Assembly: GCA_029953675.1 (NCBI GenBank)
Contig: JAMWBK010000006.1
Span: forward strand, 1,116,001 to 1,180,000
Direction: 5' to 3'
Origin: Rhodosorus marinus CCMP1338
Taxonomy: Eukaryota > Plantae > Rhodophyta
Length of the DNA: 64,000 nucleotides
Below are positions 12,040 through 57,689 of this stretch, piece after piece. The notes beneath the pieces are model-generated. The model was not told the DNA's origin. It did no database searches and saw only the letters and a list, made by a program, of their open reading frames with translations. Made by a program: the position numbers and the translations under genes. Each line of letters begins with the position of its first letter. Within the stretch, counting starts at the first letter, position 1.

Positions 12040-15000
12040 CTACACAAGCTCGCAGTTGTCGACATAGGCAGAGCTACCACCCCGTGTCTGGAAGAAGACT
12101 CCGTATGGATTGACACTGTTCGAGGTTGTGAATTCCAGGCTCACTTGCCTCCAACCACGGGATGCAAGTGACTTGCTCACAAGCACTCTTTTCCGCTGCC
12201 CATGCACACGCGAGTCGACACCGATTCTGAGCTCACCGGCCGTTGTTCGCACAAAGCATGTCAAGGTGTAGTTGCGATTCGCTCTCAGTACAATGACCTG
12301 AACTGCAAACCCTCCCCTGCTAGTCAAATCCATACTATAGCCATCCTTATCCTGAGATATATATTTCTCGAACTGCGCCCCGCCGAAAGTGCTCCAACCA
12401 CGCTCTCCATTGCTAAAGGATGGGTTGCGGAGGAACTGTCCGTCGCTGAGGGCGGTAGCAGGAGTCACGTCTGGCAAATTGGAGCTGGAGCGCTGCCTCT
12501 TCGGTCTTAAGCTATCCGTTCGTAGTGAGCAATAATCCGCGTACCCGGACACACCCGCCGCTGCCTTAATCAACAAATCGAATTCCCCGCTCACCTTAGG
12601 AGTAAACCTTAGGATTTTCTCGCCCCACGTCCTATTAAGCTCTTCATTAGGAGGATCATCGTTCCTGGCAACAACGGCTCCGTTTCTCGTGATCATGAGC
12701 AGAACAGTACTCATCTTCGTTACTGCGCACGCGAACCTGTACGTTCTGCCCTTTACCAGTTCAACAGTCTGAACAGCGGTGGACTTGTCGTTTTCTAGGT
12801 GCAATCCAATCTTTCCGCTGTACGCAACGTTTTCGAAGTTGGCTCCTGCGGAAAGATCCCAAGCCCTGCTCTCCTTCTCAAAGTCCCCATCAATCATACC
12901 GTCTCCGGAGCTACCACCGGGCTTCGGCGTCGGTGTTGGTTTGGGCGTCGGCCTGGGCGTCGGTTTCTTGGTTGGCTTGGGCGTCGGCTTGGGCGTCGGT
13001 TTCTTGGTCGGCTTGGGCGTCGGCTTGGGCGTCGGTTTCTTGGTCGGCTTGGGCGTCGGCTTGGGCGTCGGTTTCTTGGTCGGCTTGGGCGTCGGCTTGG
13101 GCGTCGGTTTCTTGGTCGGCTTGGGCGTCGGCTTGGGCGTCGGCTTCTTGGTTGGCTTGGGCGTCGGCTTCGGCGTTGGCTTCTTGGTTGGCTTGGGCGT
13201 TGGCTTCGGCGTTGGCTTCTTGGTTGGCTTGGGCGTCGGCTTAGGCGTTGGCTTCTTTGTCGGCTTGGGCGTCGGCTTCGGCTTGCCTGTGGCCTCGGGA
13301 GGATTGCCGGAACTGAAGAATGATTTCCCATCACTCGTCCACCCAGAGGGAGCCCTTGGTCGCGGTGTCACACGAGGTGCCCCAGAGGGCCTCGATGTCG
13401 AGGTCCTGTACAGCGAGCAATCGTCGATTGCTGCGCGACCATCAGCTGCGAGCAGTCTGAGAAAATAGTTGCCGTTCCTTGGGACGTCGAAGTCCATCTG
13501 CTTCTCCCCAAAGTACTTGTTTCCAGCGTAGTGAGCAAGAGCATAATTCTTCGCGAAGGGAACAGGCGTCCTTTCTCCAAATACCAAAAACCGCACCATA
13601 TCTCCAACGACATCGCACGTAAGCCTGTAAGTTTTTCCTCTCTCCAGCTTCACCGCTTGTTGTACAAAGCCGCCTTGACGAAGATAGGCCGCTCTGCCTT
13701 TCTTTGCGTACTTGCTCTGGTAATACGCGCCTCCAGCCATGAGCCAACTTCCCCTTGCTTCGAAGTCGCCGTGTCGCAGGATCTCTTTACCCACTGGGTA
13801 TTGCTCCTTATCCGGAAGTGGTTGAGGTCGATTCCCGCCAGAGAACAAGGTTGCGCAGAAGTCCGGCTTTTCCCCGGTCACACCATCCACGCCGCCCATG
13901 AAGCAGCAGGCCTGTCCAGAACACTGATCAACCTGCATTGTAACAGTGCTGATCGTGCCTCCCCCATAACCGTCAGTATATTTGACGCCAATGGTCGGGT
14001 TCCTTCCCAGCAGATCCAAATCTACAGCGACAATAAAGACTCCAAACCAGAGGAAATGGTAAGTTCTCGGTCCTCCAGCAACGTCCGGATTGTAGAAGAC
14101 TGGAACACCGTTCACAGTGATCTTCGGGAAGTCCCCCCTCTGCCATCCTCGGGAGTGCGCAATTCGGATGAATCCCATCCCTTTGCCCGTCGGAATGTTG
14201 CGGAATCTAAAGAACTGCTCCTCGTCCTCAATCGGTACGAGCACTTTGCTGTTGTAGTGCCTGGATCGCTTGATCACGCTGCCGCTTGTCTGAGAGACTT
14301 TCTTCGCGAACGTCAGCTCGTAGGTAACCATCTCATCATGTCTGATGCTAATAGTATCCGGGGCTCTGGCAGGACCTCTGCTGGAAGCCTGTGAAACGAC
14401 CCTGTCTTCGTACATGATCTTGCCTCCTCTGTCCAGAGAGAGATTCTTATCTGCTCTTGTTAGAGCCCTGTCCGCGAGCCAAAGTCTCTTCCTCTTCACG
14501 GTTTGCAACGGAGCCGGTAGGTTCTTCGGAAACTTGAAGTCGACCTCGACAGTCGCATTCCTGAGGTTCTGCATGATCATCCAAGCCTTGTCTCCATCCA
14601 GGAACGCGTGGACATAAACGTCCGGGTGCGACGAGTACGAATATGCAAAATCTCCATCAACTCCCTGGAGCATTTGGAAATACCTAACGAGGTTCGTCAT
14701 CTTGTATTGCCCGTTATTCTGTTTCACAACCATGGACCATGGATACTTGGGTTCTCCCTTTCTGGTCCTCTGTGCTGGGTCGACCGTGATGAATGAGACA
14801 GCTTTCAGCATCTTATCAGGGATCCTCAAAAGACCATGCAACACCTTCATCGCTTCAGCCATAATCTTGAAGTCCTGACCGTCAGTCGCCGGTTGCGCCT
14901 TCTCCTTCTCCTTGTCGTACCATCCGATTGTGTACGATCCCATTTCAGATACAACGTAGTCATAGACCTTTCCTCTCTCCTTCTTCGTATAGCTCTCGAT

Positions 15001-15840: not shown

Positions 15841-18800
15841 ATCTAATCTCCCGTTATTAGCAAGAGTAAGTTATTTTCCTCAAAATCTAGCCCCCCGAGA
15901 GCGTTCCAGAAAGTACACTACTGTCTCTCCTATTGTACAAGCCCAGCCATTTCTCCGTCCGTCCTGTCTACCAACCTCGCACTGTCCGATTTTCTGATTC
16001 TCGTTTCGAAGAACCTTCCCTGACTGGACGAACGTGCGGCACAACTTACGCACATCTTCTACTCTGCCTGCCGAGCCGACCTTCTGCGAACTTTACCAGG
16101 GTGACTAATCCTTCTTATATGAAATCCAACTCACAACTGTCTAAGCTAAAACTCTGGTGCAAATTCTCTTGTCAAGAGCTTGTGACCTTCCACAAGGAGC
16201 TAGTCCAGAAAAATCCAGAAAATAATACAGAAAACGAGCGAGGCACCGCAGATTTTTTTGCTTGAACGAGGTCGAGTTTTGTTTTTGCTTTTTTTTCGCT
16301 TGAGAGGGACAAGACAAAATTAAAAATTCTGTCGGTGATCGACACAAAGAGCAAATGTGCCGGGCTTTCGATACCATCCAAAAGCTTACCAATCCACAGA
16401 AAAGGGGGGAGAGAGCGGGAACCAAAAAAAGGAAGAAATTGATGAAACCCGAAGCGCAACATGATCCGGAAAGGGGCCTCGCGACGGCTTTCATAATTTC
16501 CCCGGGGCCTCCGTTGAAAACAAATTATAGCATGAATTATTGTTCCGGCGAAAAGAACAAGCCAGGAAAAAGAGAGAGGAAGTGCGACACCCAAGGTTGA
16601 ACAGACACCCACCAAACAAAAAACCCCTTCCCCTCCCTCTTCTTCCCACTATTCCGTAATTATTTCTTCCTCAATTCATACAAAAGACGAAAAATTGTCC
16701 TCAAGTCCCGTCCCCATGATGCTCGAAACAGAAATTCGAACACACATCCATTCCCACCCACCCAAATGCTTCTGTACCGATGAAATCTAAGGGAAATCAA
16801 ATGCCAATCGCGTCCCATCCATTTGCTACTCAAGTCCCATTTTTCATAAACAATTTCTTATCTCAATTCATGTTTTTCAATTTTTGCTTAGGAGCTTGAG
16901 TTTGCCACCCCAAGAATGTTGACCCTCTCCTTTCCTTAATTATACTACAAATATTACTTGCTTCATTCCCATCGGATATGATTGGTCGTTTGCAAAAGCC
17001 GTTCAGTATTGGAACCAAGTTGAGAATTGAAGTCCTTATATATAATCTTTATAATGGTAAGAAAATACACTGTTCGGACCACCGAGCCACTTTTGTCTAT
17101 CCCCAAGATTTACAAGGTTTCGAGGCAGGGGGGTATCGACCCGTGATTTGCTTCCGAGCTTTGGGAAGGCGAATTTCAAAATAGGGGTTGGATATATTGC
17201 CCCGCTGATCTAGCTTTCTTCGATTTTTTGGTGAAATATGGGATTTCTAGGTTTACAGGTCACCCATGGACATTGTCCTTGTAGGGGGGGGAGAGGGTTG
17301 AGCACCAACGGAAATTGGATGGACCCATGCCAGGGTGAAATTCAAGTTCGGAAATTCGTTTTCGGGATGAAGCACTGTTCCGTGTTTGAGACATTTTAGA
17401 TCCTTGTAGAGAATTTATTTCGATAATACAGAATATATCTAGGAGGATTGCTCAAAACGGGGGAGCCGGGGCTAGAAGTTTTCTGGAATTTCTTCATTCC
17501 AAGAGTGACTCGTCTTTATTCTGAACAAGAATTTAAATCTAGCTCAAAATGGTCTGCTTTAAGGATTAATGTTGGAAGTTTTAGAACTTTCTCAAGCCTA
17601 AAACGGTGCACAAATATGTGAAATCTTACGTTCCATGTTCCCAAGGACCCTTTTTGAAACCTACACGCTCATGGAAGTATCCAACCGCAATCTTCAGCAA
17701 TGGACTCAGGAAACAGTGTATTGTGAAAGCAATATAAGCGATATATCATCTCTTATTCATTATTTCTGAAAGAAAAGCGTCTTCCGGCCTAGACCCGGAG
17801 GGGTCCTGGTATCTCCATGCAGTTGTGCCAACAATACCAGACACCTTGAATTTTTGAAGAACTCATGATCGCCGACGAGCATCAGGGCAACCCGAGCAAC
17901 TCTTTTACGCAAAAATAGTGTAATGTATTCCAATCTACTCCTATCTTTTGGTAATATTTACTATTTACATGGCTAAAACCGACCAATTTCCTTTGGAGTC
18001 TCTGTAAAGTTCAGAAAGGAACCTAAAATGGAGGAGCCTCCGAGATTGGGGCATGGGATGGGTAATGTGTGCAAACACAAGCATGGAAAAATTGATCATG
18101 CAAAAACGAAAAAGGGGGGAATGCGAGAAGGGTTGTTGTGGGTGCCATCTGCCATCTTTGGTACTTCAACAAGGATTATCTCTATATTCTGAAGCGTTGG
18201 GCGAATTTTGCTTGGAAGTGGTAATGCTTGACAAACCGGATCGAATAGGATTCCGTTTGCTGTTTTTGAAAGGTCGGAAACTGTACATCGTTCCTCGCAA
18301 TAGATACACATTCACTCCTCTCACATGTTTCTGCGGTCCGGTTGGACAATAAACTGCAAAGGTCAAGGTTCCGTGTTCGCCGCGGGTTTTTTCCATTCTA
18401 AGGACTATTTTAGACCGTTTTTGGTCTTAATCATCACAGACGTTGCCGATGTTGATTGGCTGATTCTTCAAACTAATGGATTAATATGAGTTATGAGCTG
18501 TACTCTCCTTGGAAATAGACCCAAAGTGAGCTAAAATGACTTCATTTTTGCCTTAGCTTCTTTTTTTGGGGTGGGACATGGAATCGGGTGTGCGGGGATT
18601 GAGTCGCCTGCCAAGTGTGTATATATAAACGGACCCGATTCAATTCCACAAGAGGATTAGAATTTTTCACTTTTAATCGATTCTGTCGCTTCATAAAGGA
18701 ATGGACACGGCGGTTCGACACAGTGGATAAAAATTATATGATTTTGAGGACTGTGGCTTGAAGGGTTTTTGACCATAGGAAGGGTAGGATTTTAAAAAAA

Positions 18801-21800
18801 GGGTGTGTGGGTGGACAAACTAATTAATTCACCTGGATCACGGTAGGAGTCTGAATACGTGGAGCTATCTCCGGGTCAAAGGGGCTCAGAGGAATTGCAC
18901 GGGAACGAGGGGGGACACATCTCTCCCGGTCCAAGCTTCGTGAACCTGTCTCTTTCCCACGAACCTTGTTTCTGTTGGAAACCTACCGAACAGGCATAGG
19001 CGAAGTTTGTTTCTCGATCCTTGAGTACTGGTGTCCTTATGACTGACCACTTTACAGTTCTGTTGCGAGTCGTTTTGCGTTGAGGACTCTCCGGCTCCAG
19101 CGGCCTTTTTCTCTGGCTCGACTGAGCGCATCCTGTCTTTAATCCGAGTCACGCTCTGTGGGGCCGTCCTTCGCCCGGGGAATATTTCGAATCGAGGTCA
19201 CGACGAACGCATTATGCCATGGACCTTTCTTCGTACTATCGATCGCATCATCCGAGCATGTTCATCGTGGATGGACTGAGTTTAGACGACCTCAGCGGTG
19301 TGCTCCGCCTGATTCGGATACCGGCTAGTGTAGGTAGATAGCTATTATAGCGCACAGCTGTAAAAGTAGGTCGAGGACCACTTCCACCAAGCATGCCTAC
19401 GTTGGAACCATATCCGTGTGGGGACAAGGGTATCGTCGATTCGTAGGCTTTGGTTGCCTATTGTTGGGAACTTGGCCATGTTCTTCTCGGTTTGTGTGTC
19501 TCTGTATTCCCCCGTTTGAACTCGAAAATGAGTGCTTGCCGGTATGGCAAGTTATAACCGGTGATGACCCAAAATGCCATTTTTTTCTTCCACCTATTCG
19601 AAGTACAAGTATCCATCCAGTCGTACCAACTTTATCCGTCCGTACTCACCGTGTCAATCAAAATCCATTTAACGTTAAACCGCAAACACTAACTTTGGTC
19701 ATTGGCAACTAACTTCCCAGTGCGCTCTTCCCGCATCTAGGGAGTGTATCAGGCGCTTCCACGCTCGATCCATTAGACTGGCTCCCCTGCTCGCTGGTCC
19801 CATGGCGAGGAACCGCTTGTGGCAGCAAGTTCCCCTTACCTCGCCGGCAAAGTCAAGAATTGAGCGTTTAAGACCCTTTTCAAATCAAAAAAAAGCTAAG
19901 GAAGTCCCCCAATCGGGATAAATAGGAAAGATAACACTCAAAACACCGAGCTTGGTGACAGAAGATTCTTCTGCTTCAAAAAAAAAGAGCCCGGATCGCT
20001 CAAGTCATAATTAAGGCGGTCCTACGGAGAACCAAGTTGGCGGTCGATCCCGTCGTTTTCTTCCAAACTAAACATATTAGGGGTTTCAAGTATGGACTCT
20101 TTTCTGGAAGGGGTAGGTCTTGGATCGACTCTCACCGTAGAGTTTGGGACGGATCTTCACCTTGTACACAGTTTTGGGAAGCGTCTCATAAAATTCTTGC
20201 GGGTTCTTGATACTCGGAAAACGTTTGTGAGATGGTTTGGAAGTGTGTCATCTGCGAGTCCCCAGGGGGGGGGCTTGAGGCAATTCTGTAAATGAATAGC
20301 ACCTCTTGGGTCCAAATAGGGAGACTTTTCATCCACGGGAACCCTTGGTTTTTTGCGTTTCACAACCTTTTTTTAGATCGGTTTATGCTTCAGAGGGGGG
20401 CAGGGGAGAGCCCGCCAATAGCTCTTTTTTGTCTCCCCATTGCATCGTGGTTTGTCTGCTTTTTGTTCCGTCCTTGGAGCATATAGACTAGCGTTTCCAA
20501 AGTTCAGTTCTCAGTTCATGCATATGCGAGTTTGTCTCTGGAAGTGGCGTTTGCCGCGCAATTGGAGAAATTTACCTGAAAGAAGAAGTCCAAATCGGGG
20601 AATGTGCAGTAGTTTTTGTCGTTCGTGTTCAACATCATATGGAAAAGATGGATGCCTGGGTTTTCCAAGCAGATCATATTCCGTTCTTCTCCCGTGCTTC
20701 CCCCCGGTGGCCAAGCTTTCAAGCAGAGTTTCCGCTTTGGGTTCATGTTGCTTGATTCTGTCCCACTAGTCAAGGGACGCGTTGAGAGGAAGGTGATACT
20801 CTTTACACATCGGCGTGTCTGCCATGACCCGTCCAGGCCATCCCTCCGACACAATCATCGCGCTTATGACGTCGCGAGTATCAGCAACGAACGATCCGTT
20901 TATGATCTCAGAGTATCTTCATGCCTTGGACGAGACACGGGTTTAGACCATCGAAGAGCATGGAGGAGAAATATCGCGGTACAAGCGATATTTCGCCCGC
21001 CGAAAGCTTTTGGGCCTGGCAGCTATGCACTTGCAGCACAGAGGGAGAGCTTGTTGTTGTTGGGGGGAGCTCGAAGCCGGATCAATCGGCAACTTTCACC
21101 ATCCGTGGGGAGGATGTTCAGCTGAGGTTCATCCTAAGCGGAAGCAGGGCTGCTGGTTTCCTTAAACGCAGTTACAACGGCCTCAAGTCGTTCACAGTAT
21201 CGGTCCATGCACGGCTAAACGACCGAATGAGCTTGACCACCTCAACCCGACCGGATTTTTCTTGACTGAACCATAGTCAATATAGATTGAATAACATAAA
21301 CCCAATCTCAAATCTAGACCCTGTGTCTCAAGCTAATTATAAAAAACAAAGGGAAAAATTGGTGCTCAATTTCAGCTAACTTACGTTAACTAAAATTGAA
21401 CAACATTTTTGTTTACGCAACAACTCAAAACATAGAAATTCGTCCTTTTCATTTGTCCTACAAAATAATCATGGCATTCTAGGGAAGCCACTTGCCACGC
21501 CGGACCATCTACAACAGTTTCATAATTTAGAAAGGAAATATAATGAATCCTGTTTACTTTTCAGATACTATTCCATAATAACAGGTACAATAACTTAAAT
21601 ATATCTAACTCTGTCAATTCAATCATTTTATAAGAAAGCTTCAGTTAGAATCCCTATATTTAGACCGCGCAAAACCGTGCTTCCCTATTCTTGAAATGAA
21701 CTTACGAATCTGGAATTTGCTGACACTGTCCTAGTGAATGGCATCGTTTTCGATGTATTTCTTCAGCAATATTGTTAGGAACAAGTGTTTTTTTATATCC

Positions 21801-22518
21801 CCTCTGAGTGGGCTGAGGTGGGAATTGAAATGGTTCAGCAATGGTTTGTACAATCGACGACAGCGACTTTCTGAAGTACCAGACTGGTAATTGTGGTGTT
21901 TCTGACATGGTCGTTGCTGTGAATTAGCATCAACATCAATGGACTGATTGTTATGGAAGACTTTGGTTACGCATTTGTCCAAGTAGAACCGGGCTGGTTC
22001 TTCCCGCCAACACATATTTCCTGTCAGTTCTTCCTGCTGAATTGAACTATGTGCGTCCCTTGTGGACGATGGGCCTTGCTGAGTTGAACGCTGCAAGAAT
22101 TGAAGGGGTAGGAATCCTAAAGAAAAAAGAGGTAGATGCTACGGAACTAAGCAAAACCAGTTGCAAATGAGGCTGGTTGATAGATCTAGCCTCCCAAACG
22201 CAGGGGCCAGTGGAGCATGAGGATGGTGCTGGACGTTCCTTCCCGGTGCTCCACGTTATAGCTCACTCACGTGCTGGTTTCTCATGCAGTTCTTGGAACC
22301 GACACAGAATTTGATGAATCGACTGGTTCTCTCCATTCCAGCACGCCTATGTCAAGTTAACTTGTTGACCCGCTCACGAGCTGGACGTCAAAGCACTAGA
22401 AGAGTAGGTGCTAAGCTTTCGAGGAGAAACGAGCAACGCGAAGGTGGAGTCGAGGGGTACGCTGCTTAGAGCGAAGAGTTTTGCTTGAGTTTATGGGCGC
22501 CGCGTGGATGTAAGAAAC

Positions 22519-25137
22519 ATGACTACCGTCCGACGGATTTTGATGTGTAGCCTGCTCTCTCTGCTCTGGTTTTACGTGGAAGCAGCGGTAGTAGATGTGG
22601 ACTTCAAGGCGGATCTATGCATGAACGACGACTGCTCTTTCGAGCGGGACAAGTTTGTGAACATGCACTACAACGTTTTCAACTCCGAGCTCGACGACGA
22701 GCAGCTTGCATTCTTGATGGATGAGCTAGATGTTGGAGTAGGTCGAAACCTCCAGGGTCCGCTCTCAACCACACCTGGTTTCTCTGCCAGACCTTCCTTC
22801 TCGGAGCTGAGGGACGCCGGGAGGCAGAAGATCGAGCGGCTGAAGCGGATGGAATCAAGAAGGATCTACGACACGAGATTTAAGATCGTAGGAGACAACT
22901 ACCGAGCTTTCGAGGAAGGCAGAAAGGATGTCAGGTCGTTTATTCGGCACGCCTCTTGGTTCTTTGAAACTCATTTTGATGATTCCCAGGGTGTCATGAT
23001 GCCGAGGTATTATGAAGTTGCCAATGAGGTTATGGTAAAGTGGAACATGTTTGGGAACAATGAGAGGGAGACTCTGCACGAGATCGCAGAGTTCATGGGG
23101 GGGGTGTGCTGCGGGATCAAGGAAACACTCGGGAAGCGGGTCATGTGCGGTGGCCCCGCAGCAGCATTTCCTCACTATCAGCGACGCGACTTCGAAATGT
23201 GGAAATTGCGTGTGCACGATTTTTACATGCGCGCAGGTCGCTGCATCGATTTCTGGTCGCAACACTTTTACGACCTAGACGGAGGCATCCTAGAGGCGAT
23301 CATGGATTCCGTCAACTCCTTCACGGTACACCATTACGGGAAGATCTATCCGCAGGTAGTTTCCGAGTTTGGCGCATTCTCAAAGGCCTGGTTCGACAAG
23401 GAAGGAAATGGTGCAGCTCCTCCAACCGCCTCCCGGGACTGGGCAATCATTCACAAAACAATAGGAATCATGATGCAGCTAATGAAGCGTCCAGACCAGA
23501 TCCTCAAGACAGTAGCATTCGTTACCGGGAAATCGAGCTGGACCAGTGGGGAGCACCCTTATCCATGGGCCATGCTTAAGCCGGCAAAGAACGGAAGCTA
23601 CCAATGGACACCGCTCCTGGACATCTTTAAGGCCTTCAAAGACGTCAAAGGAGAATACAGGAGGTCCCATACTGACGACTGCAACCTCGTCATCAACGCA
23701 ATTGCTGACGACACCCATGGCTACCTTCTGATCAAGAACTCCGTGAACCGCACTATCAACGTCAAGCTCAGGCACATAAACGGAGCTCCAAGATCAAAAA
23801 ACCTCTTGATGCGGAGGCTCTACCTCAATGAAGTCCCACTGAATCCATCAGATCGAGAACAGGAGCTTACTCGTTCTGGAACTCCCGTCTTCAAGACGAC
23901 GGTGGAGTCGCCAACCTTAGCAGCTATCTCCATGAAGCCAGAGGAGATGGTGGTTCTCATCTATGAGTTTGAGTCGCCGCCGAAGATCCAGAGGCGTGTC
24001 ACAGTAACTGAGCACTTCACGAGGCAAGCTGATCTGATGCCCTTCCGCGGCCGGGAAACGCTCCGATATCGCATAGCCAACGTCCCTAACGCCGAGGCAT
24101 CTGGCAGTGCTTGGTTGAAGCTTGGCATCTCCAGAAGAAACGGGCTGTCTTTCCAAGCAAACGTCGTCTTCAACGGCGAGAGCATTGCCTACGAAGCAAA
24201 GTCTGCTCCTTACTATGACGGAGAGTGGATGCCGTACTGGGCCATGGTCAAGGTGCCTATTCGTCGAGATCTGGTAGCGATTGAAAATCGTATAACGATC
24301 TCCTTTAACGATGATGAACCGGGATGGATATCTTCAGTGATCCTGGAGCTGGAGACCATTGAAGCCACCGATGGACCGGCGGAAGATGAGTCGAGTGAAC
24401 ATGTATCGTCGTCGGTGGGGACGAGAAATCTCGTGACCAACGGAGGATTTGAGCACGATCTGGCAAACTGGGAGCACGTCGGAAGGGTCTGGCTCGCGAA
24501 TGCTGACAGCAATGTTCGTTCCGGCGGATCTGCTGTTGCCTTGAGGGAACATGCTCGAATCGAGCAGCAATTCAATGTTAAGCCCGGGAAATCATACATT
24601 GCAACAGTCATGGGAAAGGCAGCTGAGGACGGAGCAAGGCTCGAGGTTGAACTTCAACTTCGGGGGGCGGCGGTTCGAAGGAGAGCGATTGAGAGCACCG
24701 TCTTCAGCGCCTCTAGGACTGTCTTTCCAGTGAAGGTCAACTCGACAACAGGAACAATCGTTCTCCGTGTACCCCAAGACGGCGTTGGGGGTTACTTCGA
24801 CGCCGTTAGAGTAGAGGAAGTCCTACCGATAGACACCCTAGAGCTAAGCTCCCCCGTGCCAACCAGTCTCTCACCTAGAGGCACGATCTCCGTAACCATC
24901 GACTACCACGTCAGGGCAACCCTTGACGTTGTTGTGTTCATCAGACGCGGTTCAAATTACATCGCTGGAGTCAGACGAACGGTGAACGCAGGGGCTTCAA
25001 CCATCACGCTCCCCATCAACCTGGGAAGAGTTACACTACGTCGAGGCATGTACGATCTAGTTGCTTGCCTCAGACAAGCTGGCGGAAACTATACATCTAA
25101 CGTCTTCAGACTTCAAGAGACTCTACCAGTGGTCTAA
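22519..25137 (+). CDS. Second secreted GH86 beta-porphyranase/agarase-like enzyme with one CBM4/9-like module and a C-terminal Ig-like beta-sandwich (872 aa from the ATG, intronless)
   Basis: First in-frame ATG at 22519 (the ORF track starts at a GTG at 22504). Signal peptide MTTVRRILMCSLLSLLWFYVEA. Catalytic motifs YYEVANEVMVK, GGPAAAFP, HFYD and VVSEFG. MKRPDQILKTVAF aligns with [13 protein letters not shown] of the first copy. CBM start NLVTNGGFEHDLANW. Confidence 0.9.
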   Translation: MTTVRRILMCSLLSLLWFYVEAAVVDVDFKADLCMNDDCSFERDKFVNMHYNVFNSELDDEQLAFLMDELDVGVGRNLQGPLSTTPGFSARPSFSELRDAGRQKIERLKRMESRRIYDTRFKIVGDNYRAFEEGRKDVRSFIRHASWFFETHFDDSQGVMMPRYYEVANEVMVKWNMFGNNERETLHEIAEFMGGVCCGIKETLGKRVMCGGPAAAFPHYQRRDFEMWKLRVHDFYMRAGRCIDFWSQHFYDLDGGILEAIMDSVNSFTVHHYGKIYPQVVSEFGAFSKAWFDKEGNGAAPPTASRDWAIIHKTIGIMMQLMKRPDQILKTVAFVTGKSSWTSGEHPYPWAMLKPAKNGSYQWTPLLDIFKAFKDVKGEYRRSHTDDCNLVINAIADDTHGYLLIKNSVNRTINVKLRHINGAPRSKNLLMRRLYLNEVPLNPSDREQELTRSGTPVFKTTVESPTLAAISMKPEEMVVLIYEFESPPKIQRRVTVTEHFTRQADLMPFRGRETLRYRIANVPNAEASGSAWLKLGISRRNGLSFQANVVFNGESIAYEAKSAPYYDGEWMPYWAMVKVPIRRDLVAIENRITISFNDDEPGWISSVILELETIEATDGPAEDESSEHVSSSVGTRNLVTNGGFEHDLANWEHVGRVWLANADSNVRSGGSAVALREHARIEQQFNVKPGKSYIATVMGKAAEDGARLEVELQLRGAAVRRRAIESTVFSASRTVFPVKVNSTTGTIVLRVPQDGVGGYFDAVRVEEVLPIDTLELSSPVPTSLSPRGTISVTIDYHVRATLDVVVFIRRGSNYIAGVRRTVNAGASTITLPINLGRVTLRRGMYDLVACLRQAGGNYTSNVFRLQETLPVV

Positions 25138-25899: not shown

Positions 25900-27910
25900 A
25901 TGGCTGGACAAGCCCACTCCAGGCGTGGAGAGAAAAAGTCACGGCTTTCTTTTCCGAAATTCGTACGTCAGTCTCTTCTGCTTCGTATAACCGGAGTCAT
26001 CTTGGCCCTACTGGTTGTTGGGTCGTGGTTTGGCAACGGCAATCGCGAGACCTGGCCGGCGGAGCTTGATAACCTTGAGAACGTCAAACTCAGGGTCAGT
26101 GAGGACGGCACGTATCCGACGGTTGCGCATCTCATTCAGGATATTGTTCCGGGCGAGAAAGGACTGTTAGGTACCCCATATCATTCCCGAAATGCTCCTT
26201 ACTCCGCAAAAAGGTGGCATACTGTTTCCTGAACAAGTTTTCCACCCCCGGCGGGCTTCACATGGGTATAGATGATGAGAACCAGATCATAACCGCGAAG
26301 AACATCGCGCATGGCCTCAAAATATGGGTAGCGCCGATCAACAACCAGACGCTTATGTGCCTCAAGAGTCCATCAGGGTGCGGCAACAACCACGCCGCGT
26401 GGGATAAACGCGTATACCTTTTCCTCCTGGAGTTGATGGCCGACGTGAAGCCTGAAGAAGCGGATTTCGTGTTCATTCCGAACTTTCATTTCTGTTTCCG
26501 CAACAATCGAGGGTAAAGACAGATACAGATCACAACCTCCTTAGTCCGATGATGACTTTGCAAGGAATCTAACGAGCGTGATGCCTTTGGTCATTCGATC
26601 CCTTTATATGAAGGTGCTACGGAACCATCGGAAGGAGACCGGCGGACGAAGCAGATTCACTGTATTTAATATACAAAGAAACTCTGGAGACTTTAGAACG
26701 CCTAGCGCCTGGAAGGGACTGGACGAATCGCTTTGTCGTTCCTATGAGTCATGAACGCGGGGGATGCGGAAAATTCGACGACAGTTACGAACACGGTTCA
26801 CGTGAGCGAAAAATCCGCGTTTTGAATGCCGTTTGATGGTCATTCTCAAGCCCGTTAATATCGTAACCCCTCCTGACGCTAATTTCGTCATTGTAGAACG
26901 TCACCCGGTGCTGAAGGACCAGATTGCGATTAGTACCTTCGGAAATGTCGATGGCAACTGCTATCTGCCACAACTGGACGTTGTGATTCCTCCATTTATG
27001 GACTACGAAGCAGTGAAATGGGCTGAAAAGCCTCCCGCCAGCGAGCATAGGGAGTACCTAGTAAGTTGTTGCCTCATTTCTTCCTAGTTCCGACTCGTTT
27101 TATCTCTCCATATTCTCGCCACCAGATTTTTTCTTGGTCGTCGTCGTCGATGCGGGATTCGTTCCGACAGGCTGTGCCTTGATTACTGCTGGTTCACTCA
27201 GCCTTCGGCCCAAGCTAGCCGGTTGACAGAAGCTGCTCTCCCTGCTGCTTATGAAGCACTTACGCTGGTTTGTGTCCTTTTACTTGTAGTTAATCAACTT
27301 GTCAACCCAGTCGAGTGGCCACGTCGACAAGGTAGTGAACCTCATGGACAGATTCGCTCAGCAAGGCTGCCCTGGACATCCGGATAAGTGTATCTTCAAG
27401 CCGATCGGAGACCTAAATTCGCAGGAGTACGTCGATTATCTACGTAAGAGTCGTTTCTGTCTGTTGGCAGGTGGACGTAACGGATTTAGTTACCGCATCT
27501 GGGCAGCACTATTCACTGGTATGCTATGTGAAGCAGCCGAACAAGACCTGTTCTGCATCTTGAGGACATTTGCGACGTGTGGAGTTGGTACTGACAGCTG
27601 AAAACATGTTTCTTCTCCGTCAGGTTGTATTCCTGTGCTTTTGATGGATGATGGTCAACTGCCTTTTCAAGATTTCTTGGACTATCGGAAGTTTGCAATT
27701 ACCCTGAACACCAGAGGAGTGTTTATCGACAACCTCGACCTCGAAGCACTCTTGACAAGCATCGACCGGATCGGCGCCAAAGCGCTTCAGGTCAACGGCG
27801 GGAGGGTCAGGCGGAGCTTTGACTATCGCGCCCCGTTCGCAAGAGCCATGGGACCCTACGGCCTCCTTCTGGAGACCCTGAAGAAAAGGAAGCAGCAGCT
27901 AGGTTTCTAA
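25900..27910 (+). CDS. GT47 exostosin-family glycosyltransferase, type II Golgi membrane protein, multi-exon
   Basis: Basic N-tail plus one TM segment (LLLRITGVILALLVVGSWF). GT47 motifs PEEADFVFIP, LDVVIPP and YVDYLRKSRFCLLAGG...SYRIWAALFTG/CIPVLLMDDGQLPFQDFLDY. TAA at 27908-27910. Confidence 0.88.
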
Positions 27911-34628: not shown

Positions 34629-34701
34629 GCTCGCTTGGCCCAATGGATAAGGCGTCTGCCTCCGGAGCAGAAGATTCCAGGTTCGAGTCCTGGGGTGAGC
34701 G
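34629..34701 (+). tRNA. trnR-CCG: tRNA-Arg (anticodon CCG), 73 nt, no intron
   Basis: GCTCGCT acceptor pairs with GGTGAGC. Anticodon arm TCTGC-CTCCGGA-GCAGA; T-loop GGTTCGAGTCC. Confidence 0.97.
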
Positions 34702-34718
34702 CGACAATAGTTTGAAAC

Positions 34719-35210: not shown

Positions 35211-38200
35211 TCATGCTCTCTTTGCGATAAGCGCAAACTCTTCTTCGTCCAAGTTGAAGCTCTCCTTATCGCCTGCTCGATCCCCGCTGTCCTCATCGAA
35301 AGCCACAACATGTCGAAGCTTCTCGTAGTTAACAATTGTGCCAAAGTACCATCGTTTCGTATCGGACTGCAGCTCCTTCCGTGGTAAAGAGATCTAAAAA
35401 GAATAACCACAAACAACAGATCAGATCAGATTGCAACAGCTGCGGCCGCTCAGACCCGCCCTACAACTTGTGCCCTACCTTAACACGTATTCCGATGAGC
35501 TTCTTCCCGGCTTTCTTCAGAGCAGAAGACATGGAAGTGCCACTCGGAGGTGACGGAGTAGCCTTTAAACTAGCCTCTGGCGCGGTCACCCCTTTCTTGT
35601 CATGCAAGATTCGCTTCTTCGGCGTTTTGCTCCCTTTGCCTTGGTAGCCGATATCATTCAATTTTATGGACACCGTGCGCTCCCTTCCAGAACGCCTCTT
35701 CGCACTGTCTGGCTCGCTCTGCGGAGTGCTAGTGTTTGTCGGAGAAGCTAGCGTGAACTCCTTCTGCGAGTGTTTTCGAAAACAGAAAAGCCCACATTAG
35801 AAGATCTATGCAAATAGCTCAGGCCTTGAGGACACCATCTCCTACCATTGAAGATGTCCTCGCCTCTGGTCCAAGCTCTAGAGTTGGCAGCCTTAATTCT
35901 GTGGTTCTCGGGGTTTCCTTGTCCTCCGACGCCGACTTCTTATCTTCCCTGGTTGGCGCCTTCTTCACATTCTTGGAATTCAACGCGAGCTCTACCTTGA
36001 CCACGACCTTGGACGGCGTGCTCTTCGCTTCCCTAGTAGGAGTCCTCCTCGTGCTCATGACAGGCGCGTGTGAATCCAGATTTTCCTTTTTTTTCGACGG
36101 TGTCTCCCTGGGTTCTTCAGACGCAGCAACCTTGGAATGGCTTGGCTTTGTGGACGAGGCTTTCGTTGGCCTCTGGGATGGTTTTTTCTTCGCTTCCATA
36201 TCAGGGCCTGCAAGCTTGTCATCGCTCGCATCCTTTGAAACCGCCTTCAGTGGCCCCGTAATTGTCTTCTTCCTCACATTCCTCTCACGCGTAGCATCGT
36301 TCGACACGTCCAGGTTTCTTTTGTGCGGGTTCCTTAACTCTCTGGATGGTGTAGTCTTCGGCTGCTTCTCATACTCAACACGCTCGGAGTTGCTTACATC
36401 CTTGCCGGGCGTGCTCCTCAACTCCCTCGTCGGCGCCCTCTTCACATCATTCTCAACAACCGCAGAATCGGAAGCCTTCAGATCCTTTCCTGCAACACCG
36501 CGATCCGACGTCCTCAAATCCCTGGAGCGGGCGTTCCGTAGTTCTCGCGTATCAGTCTTCTTCTCTTGATTGTCTTCGACGGTCGAGTCCGAGAGGTTCA
36601 TATCCTTCGCAAGAACATTCCGTCGTTCCCTCGTTAAGGTCTTTTCCAATTTCTTTTCAAAAGCTTTGATGTTCGACTTCTTCAGCTCCTTGGCGGGTTC
36701 CTGCTCTCGTTCGGTGGGCATGGTCGTGTTCGCGTCCTGTCGTACGACAACAGCCGAATGCCCAGGTTCCTGAGCGGTTCTCGCATTCTCTTCTTCGGTG
36801 AGCACTTTCGGTAGCTGAGTCGTTGGCGTGTCCTTCTCTGCAAGAGGCGGAAGATTTTTGGTCTGCGACCGACTCCTATGCCTGAGCTCCCTCGTCGGGG
36901 GGTCCTGCGACGGAGGAGCAGTACACCCTTTCGACTGCGTAGCTGTGGCGCTCTGGGTCCTGCTACCTCTGAGTTCGGCGTCAACCGCTAGGTTCTCAAC
37001 CTCTTCTTTGCTAGCTGATTTCGGCTGGTTGAGCTTTTCATTCCCTTTCGCAGCGTCATCAAGCTTGATTTCCTTCCCGTTCAGCTTCTCACCAACCGGC
37101 TCCGCCCTGTCCTCAGGTTTCGACTTGTTGCTCACTTTCTGGAGTTTTTCACTATTCTTGGAATTCAGTTCAACCGCGGGAGCTGCAGTCAGGGATTTCT
37201 CAACACTGGTAGTACTCCTCGGTCGCAGCAGTTTATCTAGATCAGATTCCCACTCGTCACCACCAAACTTGGAGCTCCTTCTCCTTTCTCGCGGGGGACG
37301 CTTAGAAGCAGCAGGCTTCGGGCAGACAGCTTCGATGTTCTTCACGTTCTTAACCTTCCTGGTGCCACCTGTGTCTGTTTTCTCTGGAACAGGTTTAGTG
37401 TTCCTTACTCCCGCAGCCTGGGTGTGAGGACGGACCAAATAAAAGCTCAGATGGTCTCGTTCGCGAACTATCAAATAACTCGTGATCGTTTACGCTAGCT
37501 CTGTGTGCCCTGTGCGGGCAGTCCATACCTTTGCAGGCGGTTCAGAATTCGGCGATTGCGGCTCTGCAACAAGTCGAGTATCATCTTTCTCCCACTTCTG
37601 CAATGACGCAATCCAGAGATCGACGATTCGAAAAGAAGTTAAGATTGGCGGAGCTTGACGTCGATTTACGTAAATTGAGCAAAACCTCACCTGCGTGGCA
37701 TTCTTGCGTTTTCCGGTTGAACTACCCGCCCTCTCGGCTGTGTTACCGGACTCCGATTCCTGCTGTCACCACGTTTCCTCAGGTCAGAGCGAGGCAGTTC
37801 TTATAAACCGACGAGTAAATCAGAAAGGGTGATTCGCGAGTTCACCTTCGAAGGGGCAGCCGCCTCAGGCTCAGAGGGCTGTTCCTGTTCTAGTGAACCC
37901 TCTGCCGGTTGTTCTGGTTGGATCCTCTTCGGCTTGCATTCTTCCGCAGCCTGCCATTGAGGTTTCTGATAGCGAGGCAAACGTCCATTGGGCACTTAGT
38001 TCTGTGAAAACGCAACACCCGAACAGCAAAGGCGCCTGCAAGGACTCTTTGGATACCTCTTCAAGCAACATCTCCTCCTTGGCCGAATTGCCCTTTTCTC
38101 TAGACCCGGAAACGGGGGTTTCCAACTGCTCGGGTTCAGCTTTCGCGGCAAGGTCTTGAACCTGTTTCGAATTCATGTTTCGTTCAGATGCAGCTGCTGG

Positions 38201-52299: not shown

Positions 52300-52383
52300 C
52301 TCATCTTAGCTCAGTTGGCAGAGCATGGGACTGTAGTTGTGGCAGATATCCTAGGGTCGCTGGTTCGATTCCGGCAGATGAGA
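52300..52383 (+). tRNA. trnY-GTA: tRNA-Tyr (anticodon GTA) with an 11-nt intron (52337-52347)
   Basis: Acceptor CTCATCT/AGATGAG (C1-G72, typical of eukaryotic Tyr). D-arm TAGCTCAGTTGGCAGAGC. Anticodon arm TGGGA-CTGTAG[TTGTGGCAGAT]A-TCCTA with the intron at the canonical 37/38 position. T-loop GGTTCGATTCC. Confidence 0.96.
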
Positions 52384-55211: not shown

Positions 55212-55733
55212 TCAGAATGTGCCCCGTCCCTCAAGCGCCTTTTGATATCGGCGATCGTCATCGTAAGAATTTGTCGCGACGGATCGCAGGGCCTCAATGT
55301 ATTCGTGTGGGAGTTGAACGTCAATTGCTCCTTGGATAATCACCCGCATGTACAATGCGGAGGGTACAAGTCCAGACTGAGGATTCAAGACCTTGTAGGT
55401 GTAGCAGTTGATCTGGTCTCCGGATGGCGTTTTAACGCCAATCTCTAAACGGTAGTAATGACCAATTGATACTCCCTCTTGCACGTCCAGCTTATCAAGC
55501 TGGTCAGTACGAATACTCCAAATTGCACCGTGAACGGTTCCCCTTTCGTGCACTCTAATATCCGCCGCCGCACCGCCCCATCGTTCGGTATGAAGCGTGA
55601 AGTCCAACTCGTACCCGTCCAAACTTCCACTCGATATTAACTTCGCACTGGGACAATTAATCTGCAGTCGATTCTTATTCAAGTTCGATCCAAACGAAAA
55701 ATACAGAAATCGATCCTCATCCGCAGAATTCAT
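55212..55733 (-). CDS. GGCT: Gamma-glutamylcyclotransferase (GGCT/C7orf24-like), cytosolic form, intronless
   Basis: FLYFSFGSNL, WGGAAADI, VHGAIW, catalytic LDVQEGV and PSALYMRVIIQGA...LPHEY align with human GGCT as I recall it. ATG at 55733 (the ORF track starts at an upstream TTG). Confidence 0.9.
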   Translation of the reverse strand: MNSADEDRFLYFSFGSNLNKNRLQINCPSAKLISSGSLDGYELDFTLHTERWGGAAADIRVHERGTVHGAIWSIRTDQLDKLDVQEGVSIGHYYRLEIGVKTPSGDQINCYTYKVLNPQSGLVPSALYMRVIIQGAIDVQLPHEYIEALRSVATNSYDDDRRYQKALEGRGTF

Positions 55734-57056
55734 CCCTCCCCGAAACCCACCAACCCCCCCGCTATACAACCCAACACAAAGACAACACCTGCCTCCTAAT
55801 TCCTCAAATATTTCCTCTCATAGCTCCAACGTTCTCTCAGGGACTGAAAGCTAATCCCAAGACATCCAAAAAGCGAAACTCTGTACCCAAACCGTCCGCC
55901 GTGGACATCTGCTCCATACACTCCACACAACTTCCTCAGCATAAGATGAAGTCCTGAAACTCCAAATCTTCGATTTCAGCTCAAAAATAACTGTTCCAGT
56001 AAAATGGGACGAAGTCGATCGGGGGACAATTTTTAGAACAATTATTTCCAAAATTCAAAATATTGGTTGGAGGGGGGAATGCAAATTGAAGAAAACCACA
56101 TAAGTCTCGGATACTGCGTCATCTGTACCGGTCAAAAAATATTCCCATCAAGTGGTTACCGACCCCGCGCTGGAGGAGGAATTGGGGCAGGCCCGGTTCG
56201 AGTGAAGGGGTGGGCTGTGTTGACCCTGAGTCGTACTTCGCGCGCTAGGAGAGAGGTTGCATCTGCAGATTGATGATGTGCTCTCCTGCGGATCTCCAAT
56301 GGACGCCGACCAGGTTTACTCAAAATATAGAAAGTGAGTGAGAAAGGGGTGGATTCGGTGAACTGTTTAGCCCCGAGCATTAACCCTCTCAGCGTTCTCC
56401 ATTGGAACTTTTGCCCAATAATTCACACATTCACTTCGGCAGCATCAAGATCTGTTCACACATAGTACTCTTTGATCAGAACGAGTCGAACAGTGCTACA
56501 TCAGGAGCGGAAAGTAAGAAAACTAGCTACACCCCCGCGGGCCCGGTCGCATCTAGTCGCTCCTCTCACGTGGGATGATGTCTATCCTAAAAGTGAAAAG
56601 TATATCTAGCAAGATCCTAGACGAGCCGCTTCAGACGGCTTTGGAGGAACTACCTCGATCTACCAAGATCCTAGCTTGTACCTCACAAGCGACATCAAGC
56701 TATGCACTTCCTCAGGCGATCCGTTTGGAAGACCTAGCGATCTCAGTGACACTGCTCGCGAGCGCTGTGGTGAAAAGTAATTAATCTCGAGCTTCCGCTC
56801 TCGAGAGAGGAGGCTCGCATGAGACGACTTCGGGAGGTTTACAAATGTGATGAACGAGGGGAGATATTGGACGCGGAGCCGAGCAAAGATTCTTAATCTC
56901 CTGAGGGGAAGCGGTGGGAAAGGAGATTCTGTTGTAGAGTTCAACTGGATGATTAAGAGTGAGCGTTAGTCGAGCTTATGTAGTTGCCGTCTTAGGAAGA
57001 GAGGAAGGTAAAAGAACTTGTTCTGAAGGGGGGTTTTGCGAGCCATTCTGTGAAGG

Positions 57057-57689
57057 ATGGGTAGGTGGAGTGTATCTATCCTTTCCGCGATTTTGGGGAT
57101 TTCGGCATTGACGTTCGTATGCGGGTTCTGGGGCTGGGATGATGGAAAAAGGGTGGTGAAGGTGATGAGTCAGCCTGAGAGGTTAGTCTATTTCGGCTAC
57201 GGATCAAACTTGAAGGGGACTAGGTTGCAGGTTAGTGCGCCATCTGCCAAGTTTGAAGGTATTGCGCGTTTGGACGGGTTTAAGTTAGCCTTCACCACTC
57301 CGTCTCGGAGGTGGGGTGGGGCGGCGGCGGACGTGCTTGAGGCACACGGTGGCATCGTTTACGGTGCAATGTGGTCGATCGCAAGGTCAGAGCTGCTGGC
57401 AGTGGATGATCAAGAGAGCGTTAATCAGGGACAGTACTTCCGCGATTTCCAATATGTAGATGAGCTCGATTCGGGGTTCCGAAGTACTGGCAGAAAAATC
57501 AAGGTCTTGCTCTACAGAGTAAGGGAACCACAGCCCACTCTCATACCCTCCAAAGTGTACCTTCGAGTTATCCTCGCCGGTGCGAAGGAAATCGGACTAC
57601 CACCGGACTACGTCCATACGATTTCACTTATTAAGACGACACCCTATGACAACGAAACGCTCTACGAGCTCTTCATGGGACGCGCATAG
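57057..57689 (+). CDS. GGCT: Gamma-glutamylcyclotransferase paralog with an N-terminal signal peptide/anchor, intronless
   Basis: Hydrophobic N-terminus MGRWSVSILSAILGISALTFVCG, then LVYFGYGSNL, WGGAAADV, VYGAMW, VDDQESV (catalytic Glu retained) and PSKVYLRVILAGAKEIGLPPDY. Confidence 0.9.
   Translation: MGRWSVSILSAILGISALTFVCGFWGWDDGKRVVKVMSQPERLVYFGYGSNLKGTRLQVSAPSAKFEGIARLDGFKLAFTTPSRRWGGAAADVLEAHGGIVYGAMWSIARSELLAVDDQESVNQGQYFRDFQYVDELDSGFRSTGRKIKVLLYRVREPQPTLIPSKVYLRVILAGAKEIGLPPDYVHTISLIKTTPYDNETLYELFMGRA

Follow-up and report, generated by a model that had tools for sequence, protein, structure and literature searches.

A modular GH86 gene with a probable second carbohydrate-binding module in the unicellular red alga Rhodosorus marinus

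How an enzyme family known for cutting agarose and porphyran comes to be encoded in red-algal DNA, and on which polysaccharide its product would act, is the question raised by a 64-kb stretch (hereafter the window, 64,000 nucleotides) of contig JAMWBK010000006.1 (2,472,615 bp) in assembly GCA_029953675.1 of Rhodosorus marinus CCMP1338. The window holds two genes of glycoside hydrolase family 86 (GH86), here called copy 1 and copy 2, of which copy 2 is the subject of this analysis. Characterized GH86 enzymes are endo-acting β-agarases and β-porphyranases of clan GH-A that work with retention. The host is a unicellular red alga of the class Stylonematophyceae, with a nuclear genome of 31.2 Mb that comprises 8392 genes and 24,821 introns (PMC10250338). 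The identity of copy 2 as a modular GH86 gene, its module composition and its algal host are together held with high confidence. The explanation favored here for the locus as a whole, namely a secreted modular GH86 of bacterial origin acting on the alga's own galactan, is considered somewhat better than even.

The interval 22519-25137 on the forward strand is a single open frame, in which the ATG at 22519 is followed by 872 codons and a stop. The open reading frame (ORF) list gives the same frame from a GTG start (22504..25137, + strand, 877 amino acids); the earliest in-frame ATG is that at 22519, and the public gene model, a single exon of 872 amino acids, agrees with the ATG-start reading. 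The N terminus, read by eye, has a basic RR n-region, a hydrophobic core of 14 residues and a V-E-A/A cleavage-type motif, and copy 2 is predicted to be secreted. Inspection of its translation revealed no type IX secretion system (T9SS) signal and no lipoprotein signal.

The region behind the signal was assigned to GH86 by phmmer searches against the PDB, in which residues 148-612 aligned with the β-agarase 8h97 (1.7e-34), residues 27-613 aligned with the GH86A β-porphyranase 4aw7 (3e-23), and 5ta1 matched at 5.3e-33 (5ta1/5ta0 ~1e-32). As this similarity spans the core and both β-sandwich domains, copy 2 is, on sequence similarity, a member of GH86. The second of these domains matches BPA_C with 39.5 bits (E 6e-10, cut-off 26.2), and the assignment of the first is backed by a continuous alignment to the GH86 structures. 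No NCBIfam match was obtained for copy 1 or copy 2. The preliminary description of this locus had recognized a GH86 core with the motifs NEV and SEFG, and both are found in the translation (residues 169-171 and 282-285). The glutamate of the first motif, E170, is presumably the acid/base and that of the second, E283, the nucleophile, roles that we assign from knowledge of the family. The E170 column is 99% conserved in bacterial sequences and holds E in all 11 algal-clade sequences compared, and the E283 column is invariant across 148 GH86 catalytic regions. Further residues of the core signature are also kept (R43, H50, R76, E166, N169, H249, Y251, D263, G285 and N552). Copy 2 thus resembles the bacterial enzymes 8H97 (Aga86A-type), BuGH86 (5TA0/5TA1) and BpGH86A (4AW7) in its three-domain catalytic region, both glutamates and BPA_C; unlike these solved enzymes, to which it is ~25-30% identical, it has a eukaryotic host and a predicted signal peptide of eukaryotic type, lacks T9SS and lipoprotein signals, carries NEV and falls in a separate clade with 100% support. 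At the site of the acidic linker that follows, the relatives show either gaps or unrelated P/T-rich linkers in the alignment.

The last 108 residues form a module homologous to the crystallized protein 8WAE, whose title reads [quoted passage not shown] and whose chain is named Beta-agarase. As a single sequence, the module matched 8wae by phmmer at 6e-8 over 92 residues, and a profile of 22 such modules searched against the PDB matched 8wae at 4.2e-32, with no other significant match. The single-sequence AlphaFold2 (AF2) model has seven strands, with the mean predicted local distance difference test (pLDDT) score of 10-residue blocks mostly at 70-83 (range 58-83). A Foldseek comparison, which had been proposed as a check of this domain, was run on the model and returned 8wae_B as the best PDB match (E 2.7e-4, template modeling (TM) score 0.68 on the target, root-mean-square deviation 3.0 over 102 columns). 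Copy 2 also has a precomputed match to the Pfam family PF27624 Porph_assoc, marked weak. Four near-invariant residues of the module are kept (Y796, G825, Y845 and R852), together with the tail motif [IL]R..GG[DN][WY].[ST]N.

In a local search with a hidden Markov model, the 8WAE-type module was found in one to four copies in at least 33 of ~155 GH86 relatives, mostly right after the catalytic region, and a sequence near-identical to 8wae lies directly behind the GH86 region of a bacterial protein (P0111). The terminal module is therefore probably a second carbohydrate-binding module (CBM), homologous to 8WAE over its full length and modeled with the same β-sandwich fold. Given this homology to a crystallized porphyran-binding CBM, copy 2 most likely has two binding modules. 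The preliminary description had noted a C-terminal β-rich domain of ~105 residues, likened it to an accessory module of marine Bacteroidota agarases and summarized the accessory set as one CBM plus a terminal Ig-like module. The domain is present and its β-sandwich character holds, and many bacterial GH86 proteins carry it, so that its homologs are not confined to eukaryotes; the count of a single CBM has to be revised, since the tail itself is of the 8WAE type. CBM99 is described as porphyran-binding in a 2024 review; that 8WAE belongs to CBM99 is our guess. No primary paper on the 8WAE module was found in the literature searched.

Between the acidic linker and the terminal module lies one module with a GGFE...W start, the single CBM4/9-type module that had been claimed for copy 2. 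It is putatively assigned to the CBM_4_9 superfamily, CBM16-like, mainly through its homologs. A profile of 16 homologous modules matched 8xmz in the PDB at 9.6e-20 and CBM16 structures (2zez and others) at ~1e-12, along with CBM61 (2xom, 1.5e-12) and CBM22; 11 of the 16 modules match CBM_4_9 at E <= 0.01, the best at 3.2e-16. Like 8XMZ and the CBM16 of Caldanaerobius ManA (2ZEX and others), the module has a G-x-F-E...W start and conserved Q/Y/G/D positions. The deposition title of 8xmz likewise names a "novel porphyran-binding carbohydrate binding module". Cleavage of agarose or porphyran by copy 2, and ligand binding by its two modules, are predicted. The features of copy 2 and of related elements in the window are listed in Table 1.

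Table 1. Features of the two GH86 genes and of an adjoining gene, with positions in the window
Feature	Positions	Strand	Basis or remark
Copy 2, complete intronless coding sequence	22519..25137	+	ORF list, translation, public gene model
Predicted secretion signal, ~aa 1-22 (MTTVRRILMCSLLSLLWFYVEA/A)	22519..22584	+	Read from sequence
GH86 catalytic region, aa 24-612, (β/α)8 core then two β-sandwich domains	22588..24354	+	phmmer/PDB
E170, putative acid/base, N-E-V motif (aa 169-171)	23026..23028	+	Aligned with NEP glutamate of 8h97 and 5ta1
E283, putative nucleophile, S-E-F-G motif (aa 282-285)	23365..23367	+	Aligned with SEYG/SEYS glutamate of 8h97 and 5ta1
First β-sandwich of GH86 region, aa 446-501	23854..24021	+	Porphyrn_cat_1 22.6 bits, below 27-bit cut-off
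C-terminal β-sandwich of GH86 region, aa 517-610	24067..24348	+	Pfam BPA_C (β-porphyranase A C-terminal)
Acidic linker TIEATDGPAEDESSEHVSSS, aa 613-632	24355..24414	+	6 D/E, 0 K/R
CBM_4_9-superfamily (CBM16-like) putative carbohydrate-binding module, ~aa 633-764	24415..24810	+	Pfam scores below cut-off, profile, Foldseek
C-terminal β-sandwich, aa 765-872 (108 aa), 8WAE homolog, PF27624 Porph_assoc	24811..25134	+	phmmer, profile, AF2/Foldseek
Copy 1, paralogous intronless GH86 gene, 1266 aa	12040..15840	-	Three CBM_4_9-like modules, no 8WAE-type module
36-bp tandem repeat in copy 1 linker, 9.5 copies, 96% match	12941..13282	-	Tandem Repeats Finder, translation
GT47/exostosin multi-exon gene	25900..27598 (end approximate)	+	Called 434-aa gene, weak PF03016

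The natural default for a GH86 gene with CBMs would be a bacterial one, lying on a contaminant contig or in a Bacteroidota polysaccharide-utilization locus. Elsewhere, GH86 and the two kinds of accessory module are typically met in marine bacteria, and both GH86 genes are intronless in a host genome that averages ~3 introns per gene. The surroundings of the genes leave this explanation a nearly negligible probability, and it is already close to refuted. The contig of 2.47 Mb belongs to a telomere-scale assembly, and multi-exon eukaryotic genes flank the GH86 genes on either side within a few kb. The neighbors in the window comprise genes for ribosomal protein S4e, a prenylcysteine-lyase-like protein and an exostosin/GT47-like protein, Vps35 exons, an E2F domain, split acyl-CoA dehydrogenase exons, two AIG2-like genes and two tRNAs. 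Only three ORFs longer than 500 amino acids occur in the 64 kb, an ORF density far below that of a bacterium. Copy 2 also lacks the T9SS and lipoprotein signals, and MMETSP transcriptomes of R. marinus and Bangiopsis, which were polyA-selected, contain relatives of it. Both genes are bona fide nuclear genes of R. marinus and, the window being nuclear DNA of the alga, the biology to consider is the wall enzymes that a red alga has for itself and not a bacterial degradation locus.

The family was surveyed by a HMMER search of 1.84 billion representative sequences, which gave 444 relatives, 64 of them at E <= 1e-30; the best 150 of the 444 were compared, of which 23 are named. In a neighbor-joining (NJ) tree of 148 catalytic regions, rooted at the midpoint and built with no outgroup, 15 sequences form one algal clade in 100 of 100 bootstraps. 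It is composed of the R. marinus paralogs, at least six in number, a sequence from Bangiopsis sp. CCMP1999 and sequences from four SRA assemblies, and copy 1 and copy 2 fall into different sub-clades of it. The best relatives of copy 2 are not bacterial; among them is the Bangiopsis sp. CCMP1999 transcript (P0005), with an identity of 33%. The other R. marinus transcripts are P0011, P0013/P0156 and P0033, the R. marinus MMETSP0011 ortholog of copy 1 is represented by P0012/P0154/P0155, and P0006-P0009 come from the four SRA (Logan) assemblies.

The members of the clade differ in module composition. The layout GH86-CBM-terminal module is shared by copy 2, Bangiopsis P0005, P0006, P0008 and P0009, and P0007 has GH86-CBM-CBM-terminal module. 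Copy 1 is built as GH86-CBM-linker-CBM-CBM, P0011 as GH86-CBM-CBM, P0019 (a further R. marinus paralog) and P0033 as GH86-CBM, and P0156 consists of GH86 alone. Among the R. marinus paralogs compared, copy 2 alone keeps the terminal module. This module is also present in P0008, although P0008 falls within the lineage of copy 1 (100% bootstrap), which points to GH86-CBM-terminal module as the ancestral layout, lost in the copy-1 lineage. The same layout is also the commonest in the algal clade, so that copy 2 looks ancestral and copy 1 derived; copy 2 has therefore probably kept the ancestral design. R. marinus relatives of GH86 are already present in UniProt under an automatic name, and no report linking GH86 to a eukaryotic genome or to red algae was found in the literature searched. 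Copy 2 is a modular GH86 with CBM types that are already known, and its interest lies in the host and in what the modules imply about the coat polymer of these algae.

Copy 1 and copy 2 share 25% identity over 751 amino acids (E 1e-60), and both frames are open, in line with the old duplication and the two intact copies previously described. The paralogs are indeed diverged, although they do not make up a simple pair, as they belong to separate sub-clades of a family with at least six R. marinus members. Outside the window, the 2.47 Mb contig holds a third GH86 gene (KAJ8904124.1, NDN08_000651, 838 amino acids); its product (P0019) is the closest paralog of copy 1, 56% identical in the catalytic region. 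Within the window, tblastn detected no third GH86 copy or fragment. A recent tandem duplication as the origin of the two genes was rejected because they are only 25% identical, lie in separate sub-clades and the nearest paralog of copy 1 (56%) is elsewhere on the contig.

The linkers differ in charge as had been stated, acidic in copy 2 (6 D/E, 0 K/R) and basic in copy 1, where 163 residues include 45 K/R, 2 D/E, 59 P and 35 T. The tandem repeat of copy 1 encodes a linker made of a reiterated basic unit of 12 residues. The copy 1 ortholog in the R. marinus MMETSP0011 transcriptomes, 92% identical in the catalytic region, occurs in isoforms of 1202, 1226 and 1250 amino acids; these steps of 24 amino acids equal two repeat units, so that the linker is polymorphic in length. 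The subfunctionalization of copy 1 and copy 2 proposed earlier is plausible.

The named bacterial relatives, at most 28-29% identical to copy 2, belong to Bacteroidota, Planctomycetota, Verrucomicrobiota and Gammaproteobacteria and are agarolytic or marine. They include Saccharicrinis, Flavicella, a Lentimonas "beta-agarase", Aquimarina agarilytica, A. agarivorans, Microbulbifer agarilyticus and Planctomycetota. The best of them is WP_115869188 (P0010) of Marinoscillum furvescens, with 28-29% identity (E 1.4e-63). Like copy 2, it joins all three module types, namely GH86, two 8WAE-type modules and one CBM_4_9-type module; unlike copy 2, it is bacterial and has the order GH86-PA-PA-CBM (PA being the 8WAE-type module), with a T9SS sorting domain behind it. 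Within the algal clade, all named sequences are from Stylonematophyceae (R. marinus and Bangiopsis). As GH86 ranges broadly over bacteria, while the named algal sequences come from a single class, lack introns in the two genes of the window and share their modules with bacterial enzymes, we infer that a bacterial gene, modular by then, passed long ago into an ancestor of the Stylonematophyceae and was afterwards duplicated.

GH86 sequences also occur in two other eukaryotic data sets. Two transcripts (P0003 and P0146), from Stephanoeca diplocostata, a choanoflagellate, and Haptolina brevifila, a haptophyte, group together with 100% NJ bootstrap, inside a planctomycete-like clade far from the red-algal one, and represent either an independent transfer or bacterial contamination of the transcriptomes. 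The planctomycete-like protein P0002 is encoded on a 4.5 Mb contig (ENA ctg12149) in a cluster with a second GH86-type gene, GH16, α-L-fucosidase, ECF sigma factor and PSCyt/PSD1 genes, which has the look of a planctomycete locus for degrading red-algal glycans.

For copy 2, it is proposed that one ancient transfer brought a modular bacterial enzyme with GH86, CBM_4_9-type and 8WAE-type parts into the algal lineage, where duplication and the loss or gain of modules would have followed. The enzyme would be secreted into the cell coat, and its two modules would tether it to a sulfated agaran or porphyran-like galactan. There, the GH86 core would cut internal β-1,4 galactosidic bonds by the retaining mechanism of this clan GH-A family, so as to remodel the alga's own galactose-rich bound polysaccharide, for example during cell expansion or the release of daughter cells. 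This proposal draws on the porphyran-binding relatives of both modules, on the galactose-rich polysaccharide of the class and on a precedent in Chondrus, and a role of copy 2 on the alga's own coat is given about an even chance. The extracellular polysaccharide of Stylonematophyceae stays bound to the cell, and the cell-bound polysaccharides are rich in galactose, with molar contents of 78% in Bangiopsis, 87% in Rhodaphanes and 58% in Chroothece (PMC9031348). In Chondrus crispus, CcGH16-3 is a GH16 β-porphyranase that was reported as unexpected and interpreted as acting on the alga's own matrix, and its family was attributed to a bacterial transfer into a red-algal ancestor and subsequent duplication (PMC9771727). 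Copy 2 is like CcGH16-3 in being a bacterial-type hydrolase in a red-algal nucleus that is predicted to cut galactan; unlike it, a GH16 β-jelly-roll protein of a florideophycean macroalga, copy 2 has a GH86 TIM barrel and comes from a unicellular stylonematophycean. GH86 is not mentioned in the Chondrus GH16 paper (PMC9771727).

Part of the evidence pulls against this explanation, and it concerns the modules, the expression of copy 2, the tree and the substrate in turn. In the terminal module, which is ~26-30% identical to 8WAE, the positions that are commonly Trp in bacterial modules are I/R and Y, so that binding could be altered or lost. The middle module taken alone scores below the Pfam cut-offs, with 20.7 bits for CBM_4_9 (cut-off 25.9) and 26.3 bits for DUF642 (cut-off 27). 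Its AF2 model from a four-sequence alignment is all-β with 12 strands and of low confidence (pLDDT 54), and models made with no alignment reach pLDDT 23-53. Foldseek with the low-confidence model placed CBM16, 8xmz, CBM61 and CBM4 at the top (E ~6e-5 to 2e-4, TM ~0.5).

As to expression, a near-identical transcript of copy 2 was not found in the protein collections (cluster of 1), which is weak evidence as the word-index search used is lossy: it also missed copy 1 and its 92%-identical ortholog, and returned the query, the planctomycete-like protein and the choanoflagellate transcript. Copy 2 might accordingly be a silent or non-catalytic relic, either unexpressed or serving as a lectin-like glycan binder; a transcript counterpart was found for copy 1, and copy 2, which has N-E-V where most relatives have N-E-P, differs at 17 of 56 positions whose conservation in bacterial GH86 is 85% or higher. 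The residue after NE varies elsewhere too, however, being F in Bangiopsis and G in P0033, and the 39 positions kept of the 56 lie in the range of the transcribed algal paralogs (38-43). With the 872-codon frame intact and both catalytic glutamates and the core signature kept, the translation of copy 2 shows no sign of decay, and a relic is judged distinctly unlikely.

In the midpoint-rooted tree, the algal clade sits on a long branch as sister to all other sequences and is not nested among them, so that the topology does not fix the direction of transfer. GC content at third codon positions (GC3) is 0.61-0.64 in the GH86 genes vs 0.47-0.60 in neighboring genes, a slight difference that is near host-like; the lack of introns and the slightly raised GC3 are consistent with an old transfer and not diagnostic of it. 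Both the tree position and the host-like base composition would suit a GH86 inherited vertically in eukaryotes or red algae, or a transfer from algae to bacteria. This is considered quite improbable, as a single red-algal class accounts for every named sequence of the algal clade, whereas the bacterial GH86 sequences come from at least four phyla and are far more diverse. The genes are also intronless in a genome with ~3 introns per gene, their accessory modules are shared with bacterial enzymes, and the only other eukaryotic GH86 sequences seen, those of Stephanoeca and Haptolina, are placed elsewhere, in a planctomycete-like clade.

For R. marinus, the polysaccharide has been described only as a sulfated heteropolymer with glucose, galactose and xylose, and a porphyran-like structure of it is hypothetical. 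A secreted enzyme could instead act on foreign material of agar or porphyran type, from other red algae or biofilms, for feeding or clearing; each of the three modules has its nearest solved relatives among proteins that act on agarose or porphyran from macroalgae, and no agaran has been demonstrated in Rhodosorus. Red algae are phototrophs, though, and we know of no uptake route in them for such oligosaccharides. The family moreover counts at least six paralogs and is conserved in another genus of the class, which makes its own galactose-rich bound polysaccharide (PMC9031348), and the Chondrus enzyme was interpreted as acting on its own matrix (PMC9771727). A foreign substrate is distinctly unlikely, and remodeling of the alga's own coat is the role proposed for copy 2.

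With more doubt than confidence, a broader proposal can be put forward, in which Stylonematophyceae, a class of mostly microscopic red algae that branched off early, would build a coat of porphyran- or agaran-like sulfated galactan that is remodeled by a bacterial GH86 captured whole, core and both porphyran-type binding modules included, expanded to at least six genes and independent of the GH16 enzymes of red seaweeds. If so, the ancestral three-part design would survive in R. marinus in copy 2. Little is known of how galactan walls are loosened and built anew by the red algae that make them, with the Chondrus GH16 porphyranase as the one characterized case, and a second hydrolase family of bacterial type, expanded in a unicellular red alga, would supply testable candidates for the turnover of wall and mucilage. 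The modules of copy 2, relatives of the only crystallized porphyran-binding modules, would give probes for the undefined galactans of the class. The case would also add a dated example of a modular bacterial enzyme adopted by the lineage that makes its substrate. For annotation, it means that GH86 with CBMs in marine sequence data should not be taken for bacterial by default.

The two GH86 genes are divergently arranged and 6.7 kb apart. The interval between them (15841-22518) has a lower GC content (0.43-0.47) and contains no annotated gene and no repeats or mobile-element remnants of at least 25 bp; two exon-sized intergenic frames that were tried, 16175-16648 (-) and 20613-21122 (+), gave no Pfam match. 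The GT47-like gene begins 763 bp downstream of copy 2, so that a polysaccharide builder adjoins two polysaccharide cutters, which may be a functional neighborhood or chance. An exon-sized frame within it (27290-27598) matches Exostosin_GT47 with E 0.003.

Further observations in the window concern other genes. A 551-aa open frame at 35819-37474 (-) is rich in K/E/R/S/T, has a repeated TRELR motif and no Pfam match, and may represent one exon of a nuclear protein of low complexity. The two tRNA genes are located at 52300-52383 (+) and 34629-34702 (+); one is tRNA-Arg(CCG), and the other, 84 nt long, scores 53.7 bits in Rfam and received no amino acid from ARAGORN, probably because of an intron. 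A pair of AIG2/γ-glutamyl-cyclotransferase-like genes lies head to head at 55215-55817 (-) and 57054-57686 (+), with a gap of ~1.2 kb, and constitutes the second divergently arranged paralog pair of the window.

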